The notes below the pieces were generated by a model, which made no database searches, had not been told where the DNA came from, and saw nothing but the letters and a program-made list of their open reading frames with translations. DNA of 64,000 nucleotides from Trichosphaerium sp. ATCC 40318 (Eukaryota; Protista; Tubulinea): contig JALMLS010000344.1 of NCBI GenBank assembly GCA_038496445.1, positions 62,001-126,000 of the forward strand, given 5' to 3'. Positions 9,735-15,375 of the stretch are shown piece by piece; positions within the stretch are counted from its first letter, which is position 1, and each line of letters opens with the position of its first letter. The translations under genes were made by a program, and so were the position numbers.

Positions 9735-11312
9735 TTATGCAAAGGCGTAACCTAACCCACTTATTGTGCTATGACATGCTGCACAAAATACTTTGTCACC
9801 AGATGTTCTGTATGCACTTGTGATAGGGTTCATGCATTGAACGCAAACAAAACATGATTGACACATTGTCTTGCCGTTTACATTGAAAATTTGGCCTTCA
9901 ATGATTTGCTTACCACACGAACAGCGTACTGAGTTTTGTGTGGTATAGCAATTTTGGCAAAACATCTTGCCTTGGTAAGGATAAAATGTTACACCAACAA
10001 GGGATGTTCTACATTTTGTACAAACAAAACACTCAGTGTTGAACGTTTTACCTAAATTATATTTAATCAGAAAAAAAAGAATAATAAGGTAAGGAGGTAC
10101 CCATAGCCTTAATGAAGTTGCCAAGAATTTGTTTACCACAATTACAACCACAAGCATTGGATTGGGCAGTTGGCTGTGGATTTTGAGGCGGTACACTTGA
10201 AGAAAAAATTAATTGATTGTCTTGCAAAGAAAAAAAACACATTCAAACAACGTACTATGTATTTGATGGTGGTGGCGCTGGTTCATCTCCAAGAATAGAA
10301 TCCATCAAATTATTTAACATATTATCTTCTTCATTGGTTGGGGTACCAACTTTCCTCATCCTGGCAGATGATTTTGGCACTGACATTCTGACACTTTGTT
10401 GTGTTCTCTGTTGTGTTCTCTGTTGAGAAACTGGAGGTTTGTGTGACATACGCATAGATTGCTGTTGCATACGAACTGATGGCTGTCTTGACTGAGGGGT
10501 ATATCCAGCACCGGCACCACCATCAGGCTTTTGTTTAATATAAGCATTCAAGTGTCATAACAAATCGAGTAGCAGTATTCACGTACTTTATCATCCGCAA
10601 GCTCTGCCATGAGATTCTCAAGTTCAGCGTCTGATATATTACTATAGCTTACACCAGAGGCAGTTGACGCTATTTAATATTAGTACAGTATACAACAATG
10701 CAAACAAATGTAATATAAAACGCCTAAATTTACGTACCACCACTGTAGCGACTCATTGGCGCTGGTTGTCCTGTAGGTCTGTAACTGGGTCTTTGGCTTG
10801 CTCTACCATAATTTGAAGCACTGATAGCAAGTGAGTACTAAAAAAGAAAACAGACATAAAAAGAAGTTGCACTATTTACCTTTGAGAAGATAAATTAATA
10901 CCACCAGTTGCTGGTGTGCGAGGTAGAGGTACATTAGACTTTCCAGGTGTATACGTATTGTCCAATTCCAAATCATCAAGTAAATGATCAATTTCGGAAT
11001 CTAGTGATGACTTTGGTCGTGATCGCGTGCTACTAGGGTGTTACTACAATTTTTATTTCTTTTTCGGTTTCTTTTGACTCGGAATGGTTAAAAGTGTTAA
11101 CCGTACGATATTCTGGTAGCTGTGGGTGGTGCATTGGGTACTAGTGTACTGTCGAAATCGTAGGAATCGAATGAAAAGTCTTCGCTAGCCCTTTTGGTCG
11201 TAGGTTCTCTGGGCGAAGATTTCGCTGAGCCGACGGCGCTTGTGAATGTAAGGTCGTCATTTAATTCATTCATCAACGAATCAAACTCATCTAGGGTGTT
11301 TCTACGGCTCAT
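9735..11312 (-). CDS. Paxillin-like adaptor: LD-like motifs plus two C-terminal LIM domains
   Basis: LD-like motifs LDEFDSLMNEL, IDHLLDDL, LENLMAEL, LNNLMDSIL. LIM patterns CGKQI..ECFVCTKC..FCQNC and CSCGKQI..CFVCVQC..FCAAC. Confidence 0.82.
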
Positions 11313-11405
11313 GGTTATTTGTAGGCGTTGTGTGGTGCAGGTGGTGAAGTGGGGTGTTTTTTACGACTTGGCGAGACCGTTACTTTCAACCCGCTGACGC
11401 ATACA
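11313..11405. promoter_or_regulatory. Very short divergent intergenic region, putative bidirectional promoter
   Basis: Only 93 nt separate the LIM gene ATG (11312, -) from the predicted malic enzyme ATG (11406, +). Confidence 0.45.
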
Positions 11406-14400
11406 ATGCTCCAACGCGCGTTAACATCAAGATCTAGATACGTCACTCAAAGGCGGAAGCACAGAAATAATGCAGTGAGTAACTGATTTATCTTAACACT
11501 TGTTGACACCATGTAAGCGCCGTAAATATGCGTCTGAGATGTCCTTTAGCGCCTTTAAAGCTCTTCAAAAAGAAACAAACTGTGAGTGTTTGAAAACCTT
11601 GAAAACATCGCCTGAATAACCTTTCTAGTTGGTATTGCTGAATTACAATCTATGCGAAACATGTACAAGCGCCACGCTAACGGCCAACATCAAATGGACA
11701 AAAAAGACTTTGCAGCGGCAATGAGCTCGTTGGGTACGCATTAAAACGAACTCCGCTATTTTTGTAGCTCGCTAAAGATTTTAAGGTATCAAGTCCCTCT
11801 CTGCTGTTGCAGAAGGCGCTTTCAATGCATTCGATAGAGACAATAACGGTTTTGTAGACTTCAGGTGTGCAAAAATTAGAAACCGCTTTTTTTTATTTCA
11901 CCTTTTTTGAAAAAGATCCAGTAGTCACGTGGTGGTACCCCAAGGCTTAGTTTATATTTAGAGAATTTGCTGCAGGTATGTCTGTTTTGACAAGAGGAAG
12001 TGACGAAGATAAATACGCATGTAAGCTACTTGTGAACTTTTTTAGTTAAAATCCTTGCTTGTTACACTTTTTCCACAGTTGCCTTCGACATGTGGGCAAA
12101 CGAAGATGGGTACCCTACATCCGCACAATGTTTATTATTAATTTTATAATAGTCGCCTTAACCGTGATGAGACAAGAAAGTTCATAGAGTGCACTCAACA
12201 CGCTGAAATGGACGATGTCACTTTTGAGAATTTGTTTTGTTCTATAGATAGTAATGGTGATGGAGCAGTGACGTACACTACAAGTCTCTTACACTGTATC
12301 CTTCTAAACTATATTATAGGCTTGCAGAATGTAAGAGGGGCATAGCAAAGAGTCAACTTGTCTCTACTTCGGAGCCAGAAGATGAATCTTTAACAGGCTT
12401 TACAAGTTCAGAGAAAAAAGTTTTGTCAATACTTTGGGAAGGCTCAACGAAGTCAAAAGGTTCAACCAACTTCTTAAATATCTACCACTATACCTCATAT
12501 CAAATATCTAGGTGATACTATTGTGACTCAAAACCAAGAAAAGGACGCTGACGTTCTGTACTATGTATCAAAGGGTTCAGTTCAGGTACGATATTTTACA
12601 GTTGTTGTCGTTGGGGCTAATTCTGTTTGTCAAGTTAACTAGAAACGATGTTGTTGTTGAAACTGTTGAAGAAGGTCATTTCTTTGGTGAGGAGTGTATG
12701 TTTGTTTCCAAGTATGCAACAGGAGCAGTTGCAAATACAGATGTTGTTCTACAATGCATAAATACATCAGATTTGCTTCCTTGTACGTAATCTACAAGCT
12801 ATGTAGTGGTTCTTTATTTACTTTTTAGTGCTTCTTCATTCTCATGAAGGTGTTGTTAAACTTGTTGAGGTTAGTTAGGCATTCGTTAAACAAGAACAAA
12901 GGTTAGCTTACTGTTGTTTTTACTGTAGCGTTTTCGTAAGGATTGCTCTCAACGCTTTCATAATATTACAATGCTTGGTATCAAGCATGAAGCTTTGCGT
13001 GCTGATGAAGAACTTACAAGCATCACAAACAAGCTCATGACACAGCTTGCATTAACTTATCATTCTTTGGGAGCCAAGGGAAAACTCGTACGCGTTATAA
13101 ATTGCATTGTAATGGAACTTTTTTTTAACTTGTTGTAAGGGTATTACTACAACAAAACAAGTCGGTTCCGCAGAAGATCTGAGTATTGCATACAGTCCAG
13201 GTGTTGCTGAACCTTGTATTGCTATGTAAGTATAGTTCGTGATACAAGAAACTCACTTTTCTTCGCAGCAAGAATACTCCTGATTTGGCTTATGAATATA
13301 CAGCCAAGTCCCATTTGGTTGGTGTTGTATCGAATGGTACCATCTTCAACTTAAACATTAGTTTATGGTTAATTTGCTCGTAGGTACTGCTGTACTAGGT
13401 CTTGGTAATATTGGAGCGCTTGCTAGCAAGCCTGTTATGGAAGGAAAAGCCGTTTTATTTAAGAAATTCGGTGGTTTAGATTCTTTTGATATTGAGGTAC
13501 ATCTTTTAAGGCTGTTTTTATCGAATTAACTGTTCGGTAAAGGTGAACGCAAATGATCCACAAGCGTTTGTAGATATATGTTCTTCCCTTGAACCTACTT
13601 TTGGTGGTATCAACATCGAAGATGTTAAGGCTCCAGAGTGTTTTTGGATCGAAAAAGAAGTTCAAAAGAGATGCAAGATTCCAATCATGCATGATGATCA
13701 ACATGGTCCGTCGCCGTTTTATGTTGCGTAATCAAATAGCTTATTAATAATAGGTACTGCTATTATTGCGGGTGCTGGTCTATTGAATGCGCTTAAACTG
13801 GTTAACAAGAAAATTGAAGAAATAAAGGTATGCTTCTTTCTTTTTAGTTTTGCGCAGCTATACAAATTACTAAATAGAGTTTAGGTAGTTGTATGTGGTG
13901 TTGGTGCAGCCGGCTTTACTTGTGCACGTTACTTTGTGAGTCTTGGTGTCAAGAAAGAGAATTTATTCTGTGTTGATGTCAATGGTGTCATTTACAGTAT
14001 GTTCATAATAGTAGTGTTTAGTCTTCTAACACTTTTGTTTAAGAGGGTCGTGATGATCTCACACCGGATAGTTACCTCCAGGAAGTAGCACAAGAAACTG
14101 ATAAAAGAACGCTTGCTGAGGTAGTTCAAGGAGCTGATGTATTTTTGGGATGCTCTGCTGGAGGTCTAATGAAGCCTGAAATGTTGAAAAGTATGTAGAA
14201 CTGCCTTTTGTGTTACGAATATGGCTAACTTTTTTTGTACCTAGCAATGAATGATAATCCGCTTGTATTCGCCTTGGCTAATCCAAGACCAGAGATTTCT
14301 GTTCCTAGAGCTAGACAAACACGCTCAGATGTGATTATGGCGACAGGTAGATCAGACTTCCCAAATCAGATTAATAACGTGAGTTCTCTTTCTTTCTCAT

Positions 14401-14896
14401 TGTTTTTCTTTTGGCCGCTTACGTATGTTGTATGTAACTTGAATTTACTATTTTTATATTAGGTATGCGCTTTCCCTTATATCTTCCGTGGCGCTATTGA
14501 TGCTCGTGCAACAGAAATAAACGAGTACGAGCTTTTTATTACCTGTGAGGTTTTTGTTAACTCTTGTTTTCTCTCTTTAGAGACATCAAACGTGCAGCAA
14601 CTAATGCGATTGCAAAACTTGCTCAAGATGGTGACCAACCGTATGTTATTAATTAAGGTTCTTTATGCCTTCTATAGTACTAACATGATGTAGTTTTGGC
14701 CCAGATTACATTATTCCAAAACCATTCGACCCTCGTCTTAAAATTGAAGTGTCTTCTGCTGTTGCTCAAGCTGCAAAAGATTCAGGTATGCTTAAATAGC
14801 CATATGGTTGTTATTTTAATATTTGGTGCAGGTGTTGCTACAAAAGAGCTTGATATTAAGGAATACAGGCATATGTTGAGAGAAGAGAAAGTATAA
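11406..14896 (+). CDS. Fusion protein: mitochondrial-type presequence + NCS/calcineurin-B-like EF-hands + cNMP-binding-homology domain + bacterial-type (MaeB-like) malic enzyme
   Basis: About 23 GT-AG introns join into one frame. N-terminus [31 protein letters not shown] loops [12 protein letters not shown] and [12 protein letters not shown]. cNMP-like [22 protein letters not shown]. Malic enzyme motifs [118 protein letters not shown]. Confidence 0.92.
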
Positions 14897-15375
14897 TCCA
14901 AAAAGGAACTTAAAACTACTGAGTTCAAAAAACAGTTCATCTTAGACCATAAATATTCAAGTCGTACCCGAGCTCATGTTACAAAAATAGTATGATTGGG
15001 TTATAATTTCTGAGCTAGAAAAGAGTAGAATATTAAACACTTTTCGTATTCATTTATTCAATGTAAATACAAATTCACGGTTCCGGATAATCCCACAAAA
15101 CTAACAAGAACCTAGAACCTTTCGACTTCAATTTGTATTGATCTTGTTTCTTTTTTGATACTACAATTGCTAAGTTACACATCGAATACAGGGAATTTAT
15201 CTCAGTGTAAACTCAAGTGCGGTAGTAAGAAGTCTATGGTTATTTCACCCAGTGGCATTCTGCAACAAAAACAAAACATAATAGCAATATTTTCGTTGAT
15301 CACTACATCAAGTGTTACAATTACACTAGCTAAAGGCAATAGCCGAAAAGAAAATAGTGAATTTGGACAGATTTA

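Follow-up and report, generated by a model that had tools for sequence, protein, structure and literature searches.

The DNA analysed here, referred to below as the window, is a stretch of 64,000 nucleotides (nt) from Trichosphaerium sp. ATCC 40318 (assembly GCA_038496445.1, contig JALMLS010000344.1, positions 62,001 to 126,000), and on its forward strand, at 11406..14896, it carries a gene in which a module of four EF-hands, a cyclic-nucleotide-binding (CNB) fold, two long helices and a malic enzyme (ME) follow one another in a single protein. Rebuilt from the sequence, the coding region consists of 24 exons and 23 introns and holds 754 codons and a stop; the introns are all of the GT..AG type and 43-97 nt long (mean 53), phases agree across the joints, and there are no internal stops. 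Exons 1 to 8 lie at 11406-11474, 11518-11581, 11629-11733, 11786-11864, 11962-12020, 12079-12109, 12153-12272 and 12320-12459, exons 9 to 16 at 12512-12585, 12635-12782, 12829-12869, 12929-13087, 13140-13225, 13269-13336, 13384-13496 and 13543-13705, and exons 17 to 24 at 13754-13827, 13885-13996, 14044-14190, 14245-14378, 14463-14524, 14581-14640, 14694-14785 and 14832-14896. A first-pass annotation, made from the sequence alone, had described about 24 exons and one protein of about 750 amino acids (aa), and its exon count and open frame are borne out. The exon 2 acceptor is placed by RNA contigs at 11518 and not at about 11539/11549, and the acceptor at 11539 was discarded; the boundary at 11518 adds seven in-frame residues (RRKYASE) and brings the protein to 754 aa. 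A second candidate, an in-frame acceptor for exon 4 at 11813 that would drop IKSLSAVA, was also rejected, as orthologues have a segment of equal length there; this joint is without RNA cover.

Transcript support was sought in contigs of four public runs (X1 to X4 among their labels), which were aligned to 11300-15000 and which derive from spliced RNA, because the introns are missing from them. Spliced contigs back 21 of the 23 introns: 19 joints are listed explicitly, intron 5 was deduced from a 13-nt loose contig end identical to the end of exon 5, and intron 6 was deduced from how long the aligned pieces of an X4 contig are. In this set, a 1627-nt contig of run X4 extends from about 12679 (exon 10, in the CNB domain) via exons 11 and 12, which encode the linker, and all of the enzyme exons to beyond 15000 in the 3' untranslated region, and other contigs tile exons 1-3 and exons 5-10; no single contig covers the whole gene. 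Single-base differences between the contigs (X2, X3, X4) and the window were seen at 13178, 13454, 13460, 13623, 14324 and 14327 (T>C, C>A, A>G), with a low contig depth in X2 and X3 (about 2), and these look like strain or allele variation rather than editing.

The architecture is far beyond chance, and it is that of a single nuclear gene giving one spliced mRNA and one 754-aa protein, as the first-pass annotation had read it from its EF-hand, CNB-homology, linker and malic enzyme parts; the single-protein status leans mostly on the open spliced frame and on orthologues, not on the contig alone. The window protein aligns end to end, at 43-57% identity, with cDNA-derived, independently assembled proteins of other eukaryotes. 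It could be argued instead that the fusion is an artefact, in which an EF-hand/CNB gene and a malic enzyme gene were joined by eye or by read-through transcription, given that the whole gene is not in one contig and that two introns are without cover. This is very improbable, since one spliced contig links the CNB domain, linker and enzyme in one open frame, neither a stop nor a start context lies between the parts, the same order with end-to-end alignment is found in transcriptome- or genome-derived proteins of about ten named species, and bacterial homologues hold the CNB domain, linker and enzyme in a single open reading frame.

The C-terminal part of the protein (aa 353-754, 13055..14896 with the stop codon) is a class-II malic enzyme. 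On the exon pieces of the window, the Pfam family PF00390 (malic) matches exons 15 and 16 (E 5e-10 and 6e-5), and both malic and Malic_M are matched in the orthologues that align end to end. For whole-protein searches and structure models, the closest full-length relative, P0163 (55% identical), was used as a stand-in; its AlphaFold2 model has a mean predicted local distance difference test score (pLDDT) of 88.5 and a predicted template modelling score (pTM) of 0.79, and its sensor part alone (residues 1-350) has 84.7 and 0.76. Against MaeB structures, P0163 gives an E of 1e-143 at 55-57% identity, and its model has a template modelling (TM) score of 0.92 to 6zn7. By alignment to Bdellovibrio MaeB and with the paper on the MaeB structure (PMC7902834), each catalytic residue of the window protein could be mapped to a MaeB counterpart: the catalytic Tyr381 of AYSPG, in the N-terminal crossover segment (13188..13202), to Tyr52; the catalytic Lys436 of MEGKA (13437..13451) to Lys107; Glu478/Asp479 of NIED (13612..13623), which serve metal binding and proton transfer, to Glu149/Asp150; and Asp503 of HDDQHG (13690..13755), a motif that is split by intron 16 and whose joint 13705>13754 is present in X4, to Asp174. 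The dinucleotide-binding motif GVGAAG (residues 536-541, 13897..13914) corresponds to 207-GAGASA-212 of MaeB. These strings, the NCS-like signature and the two calcium loops quoted in the first-pass annotation are all found in place, and the malic enzyme domain is, as had been claimed and as far as these residues tell, catalytically complete. Among the residues that determine NADP use in MaeB, Asp233 and Arg242 are retained but Lys250 is replaced by Leu, so that an attempt to predict the cofactor from them was set aside as ambiguous.

MaeB (Bdellovibrio and E. coli; 6ZN4, 6ZNG, 9KRU, 9KRW) is thus the nearest described relative on the enzyme side, with the same class-II catalytic domain and all of the catalytic residues. 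In MaeB, the crossover segment hands the catalytic Tyr to the active site of the partner subunit, and class-II malic enzymes form tight dimers without the need of a sensor module (PMC7902834). The likeness extends to the fusion of a non-catalytic sensor domain to a dimeric enzyme for allosteric control, as described for MaeB (PMC7902834) and as predicted for the window protein. The sensors themselves differ, as that of MaeB is C-terminal, of PTA type and reads acetyl-CoA via a hexameric ring, whereas the window protein has N-terminal EF-hands and a CNB fold. It ends a few residues past the enzyme domain, without a PTA domain, and it has a 12-residue gap at the position of the MaeB hook relative to 9KRU and 6ZN4; having neither the PTA domain nor the hook insert, it is not a MaeB hybrid. 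Near the hook site of MaeB, toward the C-terminal end of the enzyme, the core chlorophyte orthologues P0015, P0160, P0161 and P0162 carry a low-complexity insertion of about 110-200 residues.

Ahead of the enzyme, aa 191-303 (12363..12848) form a connecting helix and a beta-barrel of CRP/CAP-like CNB fold, identified through the Pfam scores of orthologues and the fold of P0163. The cNMP_binding family was scored in the window on exon 10 only, where it gives an E of 1e-4 and 22.6 bits, under the cut-off of 27.5 bits; orthologues score 28.7 (Pyxidicula) and 33.4 (Tetraselmis), and the bacterial P0139 scores 55.5. In the fold search, residues 195-321 of the P0163 model match CAP with a Z of 14.7 and a root-mean-square deviation of 2.2 over 121 residues, followed by Vfr (Z 14.3), and further matches include FixK2, FNR, NtcA and CooA, SthK (Z 12.7), the PKA regulatory subunit (11.8), and PKG and channel CNB domains. 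By these matches, the P0163 model has the eight-stranded barrel and the flanking A, B and C helices of a CNB domain. Transcription factors of the CRP/CAP-FNR type are the best structural match for the CNB domain with its long C-helix and, like the window protein, consist of a sensor barrel, a dimerisation helix and an output domain; their output is a helix-turn-helix DNA-binding domain, whereas that of the window protein is an enzyme, and the CNB domain of the window protein lacks the nucleotide-binding Arg. The barrel is followed by two long helices (aa 304-352, 12849..13054), the counterpart of the CRP C-helix and then a helix that leads into the enzyme, which in the P0163 models span residues 292-318 and 326-345 at a pLDDT of about 90. 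CAP aligns to the P0163 model through CAP residue 136, a stretch that we take to be the CAP dimerisation helix. These linker helices have homologous counterparts in bacterial proteins described below, and the 1627-nt contig bridges them.

While the fold is preserved, its pocket is not. In the degenerate phosphate-binding cassette (aa 264-279, 12683..12730), the Gly-Glu is kept and the Arg is replaced; in the family alignment, 20 of 25 bacterial proteins that join a CNB domain to a malic enzyme (CNB+ME) have the phosphate-binding Arg (in Arg-Thr/Ser), and none of 21 eukaryotic members has it, the window protein included. The bacterial cassette follows the pattern GEM.LF...R-T/S, and the eukaryotic segment varies freely. 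As the phosphate-binding Arg is absent from all 21 eukaryotic members, cyclic-nucleotide sensing by the window protein appears unlikely, so that the first-pass annotation was right about the presence of a CNB-homology domain and probably mistaken in treating it as a nucleotide sensor. The bacterial CNB+ME proteins probably do bind a cyclic nucleotide, to judge from the cassette, which is canonical in 20 of 25. Members from core chlorophytes (P0015, P0160, P0161, P0162) have an insertion of 9-10 residues inside the decayed cassette.

The domain may still be a ligand sensor, binding either a cyclic nucleotide in a non-canonical manner or a metabolite and acting as the main regulator either alone or together with Ca2+. 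Its fold is intact and confidently modelled, its structural neighbours include NtcA (2-oxoglutarate) and CooA (haem) as well as CAP, the Gly-Glu of the cassette is retained, and control by metabolites is usual for malic enzymes (PMC7902834). We consider this unlikely, however, because of the absence of the Arg throughout the eukaryotic members, the free variation of the cassette, which looks like relaxed constraint on the pocket, and the family alignment, in which no conserved replacement motif is seen.

The sensor module proper (aa 31-190, 11539..12362) consists of four EF-hands, as supported by Pfam, by the orthologue sequence and by fold matches. Pfam EF-hand families match exons 4 and 7 on the exon pieces of the window, and in a sequence search of the PDB, P0163 matches calcineurin B, GCAP1, NCS-1 and hippocalcin (E 1e-11 to 1e-17). 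In the fold search, residues 17-209 of the P0163 model, the EF module of which is 41% identical to that of the window protein, match calaxin (Z 16.2), CBL2 (15.1) and NCS-1 (14.9), then CIB2, KChIP2, calcineurin B, CHP2 and GCAP3; in this model, eight helices are arranged in four pairs as a compact globule. Both kinds of match agree with the earlier assignment of this module to an NCS/calcineurin-B-like type. Proteins of the NCS, CBL and calcineurin B class are switches.

The individual hands differ in quality. EF1 is non-canonical, as it is in NCS proteins and calcineurin B. EF2 has a canonical Ca2+ loop (pattern match; aa 96-107, 11833..11965, split by intron 4), which is kept in the amoeba-type, Creolimax and Pycnococcus-type orthologues. 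The loop of EF3, WANEDGRLNRDE (aa 131-142, 12093..12171), is defective when aligned with orthologues that read WD.D.DG: a one-residue deletion puts a Trp at loop position 1 and leaves no Asp there. This deletion is not an error of the splice model, because an X4 contig covers the exon 5-6-7-8 chain. EF4 again has a canonical loop by pattern match (aa 168-179, 12247..12329, split by intron 7), with its joint 12272>12320 present in runs X2 and X4, and the loop is kept in non-chlorophyte orthologues; EF2, EF3 and EF4 are canonical in most of these.

The compact globule of four EF-hands with a degenerate first hand is shared with NCS-1/frequenin, KChIP, hippocalcin, GCAP, calaxin, plant CBL/SOS3, calcineurin B, CHP and CIB, and the alignments, of which the ranges were used, reach model residues 201-209, so that a trailing helix after EF4, as in NCS and CBL proteins, may also be present. 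Each of those proteins exists as a subunit of its own and attaches to its target non-covalently, often with an N-myristoyl group, whereas the module described here is covalently part of an enzyme; it is internal, with a basic 30-aa presequence before it and the rest of the enzyme after it, and has no myristoylation site. In the P0163 model, the EF-family alignments end at 201-209 and the CRP-family alignments start at 186-195, and both include the helix 195-204, which suggests that the EF module and the CNB domain share one helix. Separately, the ESM Atlas holds eukaryotic clusters of 259-287 aa with EF-hand and cNMP_binding domains, commonest in diatoms and with a sub-threshold value of 0.87 to the sensor part; these could be stand-alone sensors or fragments of fusions.

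The presequence itself (aa 1-30, 11406..11538) has 10 Arg/Lys and at most one acidic residue among its 30 residues, and the joint of exons 1 and 2 (11474>11518) is present in run X1. Beyond the start of the divergent neighbour, the first ATG to be met is the start codon at 11406, which is preceded by an in-frame stop at a distance of 27 codons. Comparable basic N-termini are found in the Pyxidicula, P0275, Creolimax and Pycnococcus proteins and not in the core chlorophyte ones. This N-terminus looks like a presequence, and it is probably a mitochondrial targeting peptide.

Relatives of the window protein were collected in several ways. A HMMER scan with exon 16 against 1.84 billion representatives returned several proteins of 770-905 aa with the match near residue 470-580, as in the window protein; there was no 100% match among the representatives, and the window's own protein seems absent from protein collections. 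Among the proteins returned, P0003, P0070 and P0015 combine EF-hand families with malic and Malic_M, and in P0003 and P0015 the score for cNMP_binding is above its cut-off as well. A profile search gave about 20 eukaryotic proteins with the layout of EF-hands, CNB domain and malic enzyme (EF+CNB+ME), all public and bearing automatic names only. They include amoebozoan members (Pyxidicula operculata, and Amoeba proteus as a 5'-truncated sequence), an ichthyosporean one (Creolimax fragrantissima), green-algal ones from Pycnococcus provasolii (GHP03157.1, 'EF-hand domain-containing protein'), Pseudoscourfieldia marina, Tetraselmis chui, Pyramimonas parkeae, [Myrmecia] bisecta, Tetradesmus obliquus and Scenedesmus sp., and several metatranscriptome proteins. 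The layout is therefore not peculiar to this genome. Candidate eukaryotic isoforms without EF-hands (P0172 of Amoeba proteus; P0170, P0165 and P0166) were dismissed as 5'-truncated assemblies, as they start inside a domain. A word search with the N-terminal region of P0163 returned Pyxidicula alone; such a search needs shared words and is uninformative on the range of the family.

The same profile search found the CNB+ME core in bacteria, in some 30 proteins of 557-618 aa in which cNMP_binding, malic and Malic_M occur without EF-hands. Their labels are Planctomycetota, Myxococcota or metagenomic, and one of them sits among ordinary bacterial genes. At about 50% identity, they match the window protein from its residue 190-200 as far as its C-terminus, with a homologous CNB domain, helical linker and enzyme (one is named 'malic enzyme/CRP-like cAMP-binding protein'), and are unlike it in having neither an EF-hand module nor a presequence. 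When 85 enzyme domains are placed in an unrooted maximum-likelihood tree, every CNB-bearing enzyme lies on one side of a branch with support of 100/100, and within this group 23 eukaryotic members lie on one side of a branch (98/91), adjoining the bacterial CNB+ME protein P0196; the window protein belongs to a starred set, with amoebozoan and related metatranscriptome sequences. The simplest reading is that the eukaryotic genes have one bacterial CNB+ME ancestor, after which the EF module was gained and the nucleotide pocket lost.

Two other kinds of protein came up beside this family. One consists of bacterial proteins of about 837 aa with two tandem malic enzyme units (P0173-P0192, P0200 and P0209, one of them labelled candidate division NC10), which form a clade of their own (100/100). 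The other is P0214 (MDP2436447.1), a partial protein with EF-hand and malic enzyme parts labelled 'MAG: archaeon', which is probably of eukaryotic origin, its contig having been binned with an archaeal genome, as its layout is of the eukaryotic type.

Other EF-hand-bearing proteins in this area of metabolism are the mitochondrial glycerol-3-phosphate dehydrogenase, the external NAD(P)H dehydrogenases of plants and fungi, and the Aralar/SCaMC carriers. In the animal matrix dehydrogenases (PDH phosphatase, IDH3, OGDH), Ca2+ is sensed by means other than EF-hands. A further example is the diatom NAD-dependent isocitrate dehydrogenase PtIDH1, in which, as here, EF-hands are fused to an enzyme of central metabolism, with the EF-hand domain at the C-terminus (PMC7460673). 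PtIDH1 and the other EF-hand dehydrogenases and carriers differ from the window protein in the enzyme, in the position of the domains and in the type of EF-hand, and they have no relay domain of CNB fold.

The best explanation of the whole, to which we give a probability of about 0.6, is a conserved eukaryotic EF+CNB+ME family in which a malic enzyme is tuned by Ca2+ through a CRP-like relay. In such a system, the enzyme would act as a dimer, like other class-II malic enzymes, with the crossover segment that carries Tyr381 following directly on the two long helices, the first of which is the counterpart of the CRP C-helix. In CRP, the C-helix serves both dimerisation and transmission, and the pair of CNB domain and C-helix moves. 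If the pair moves likewise in the malic enzymes, it could displace Tyr381 and open or close the active site. In the bacterial CNB+ME proteins the trigger would probably be a cyclic nucleotide; in the eukaryotes the nucleotide site would have decayed and the EF-hand module been added, so that Ca2+ at EF2 and EF4 would drive the same relay through the helix that the EF module and the CNB domain apparently have in common. The outcome would be Ca2+-tuned flux from malate to pyruvate and production of NAD(P)H, probably in the mitochondrial matrix. For the window protein, Ca2+ is the probable input on sequence grounds, and we infer both Ca2+ gating and a mitochondrial location. The fuller scenario of a sensor swap, in which eukaryotes acquired a bacterial malic enzyme controlled by a cyclic nucleotide, its pocket was then lost and it was joined by an NCS-type EF module with a shared helix, through which Ca2+ drives the C-helix and crossover segment, is put forward tentatively, at a little short of even odds.

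Several points weigh against a Ca2+-tuned enzyme of this kind. The structural models are of an orthologue monomer, and the shared helix and the relay were read from the first and last residues of aligned ranges and from the secondary structure of that model. The presequence call is one of residue composition. On the transcript side, the tiling of contigs combines several runs and at least three coded organisms or strains, with single-base differences in a few of the contigs, and introns 3 (11734-11785) and 4 (11865-11961), both inside the EF module, are not reached by any RNA contig and have frame and homology as their support. Two of the four loops of the window protein, EF2 and EF4, are canonical, with EF1 and EF3 defective, and in the core chlorophyte members EF4 is gone and EF2 has a different last ligand; on account of these losses, Ca2+ control may not be family-wide.

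These defective and lost loops would also suit an explanation in which the N-terminal module does not switch but has a constitutive role in structure or oligomerisation, with Ca2+ perhaps needed for stability only. The high pTM of the P0163 models, which suggests a rigid assembly of sensor and enzyme, fits it as well, and PtIDH1 provides a precedent, in that deletion of its EF-hand domain broke the dimer and abolished activity while its Ca2+ sites affected calcium tolerance and not switching (PMC7460673). A purely structural role is nevertheless quite unlikely, given that canonical EF2-EF4 loops are kept across distant non-chlorophyte lineages, that class-II malic enzymes dimerise without such a module (PMC7902834), and that the module belongs to a class the members of which are established as switches.

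Malic enzyme is a source of NAD(P)H at the malate/pyruvate node, and its known controls are metabolites or, in MaeB, the acetyl-CoA-sensing PTA domain. If a Ca2+-tuned form exists as proposed, several lineages of protists and algae would have carbon flux and reducing power coupled directly to Ca2+ signals, and amoebae, green algae and ichthyosporeans would have an EF-hand route to the control of mitochondrial NAD(P)H and pyruvate that is independent of the animal matrix dehydrogenases. The bacterial CNB+ME proteins, with an intact pocket, and the eukaryotic EF+CNB+ME proteins, with a decayed one, form a natural pair of before and after, which could show a relay that is kept while its input is exchanged. 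A full-text literature search, with subscription journals outside its coverage, found no papers on malic enzymes with EF-hand or CNB domains, in agreement with the first-pass annotation, which knew of no described malic enzyme with EF-hand and cNMP sensor domains, and none on bacterial CNB+ME fusions. The finding amounts to a regulatory variant of a well-known enzyme that has gone undescribed, and not to a new family in the database sense, as the sequences are already public, and for the same reason its value lies in the family rather than in the locus at 11406-14896.

Upstream of the malic enzyme gene, a divergent gene on the minus strand (seen in the region 10700-11312 of the window) has its ATG at 11312 and a protein that begins MSRRNTLDEFDSL. 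Its ATG on the minus strand and the ATG at 11406 on the plus strand are 93 nt apart, with no ATG between them, and this head-to-head pair probably uses a common, very short bidirectional promoter.

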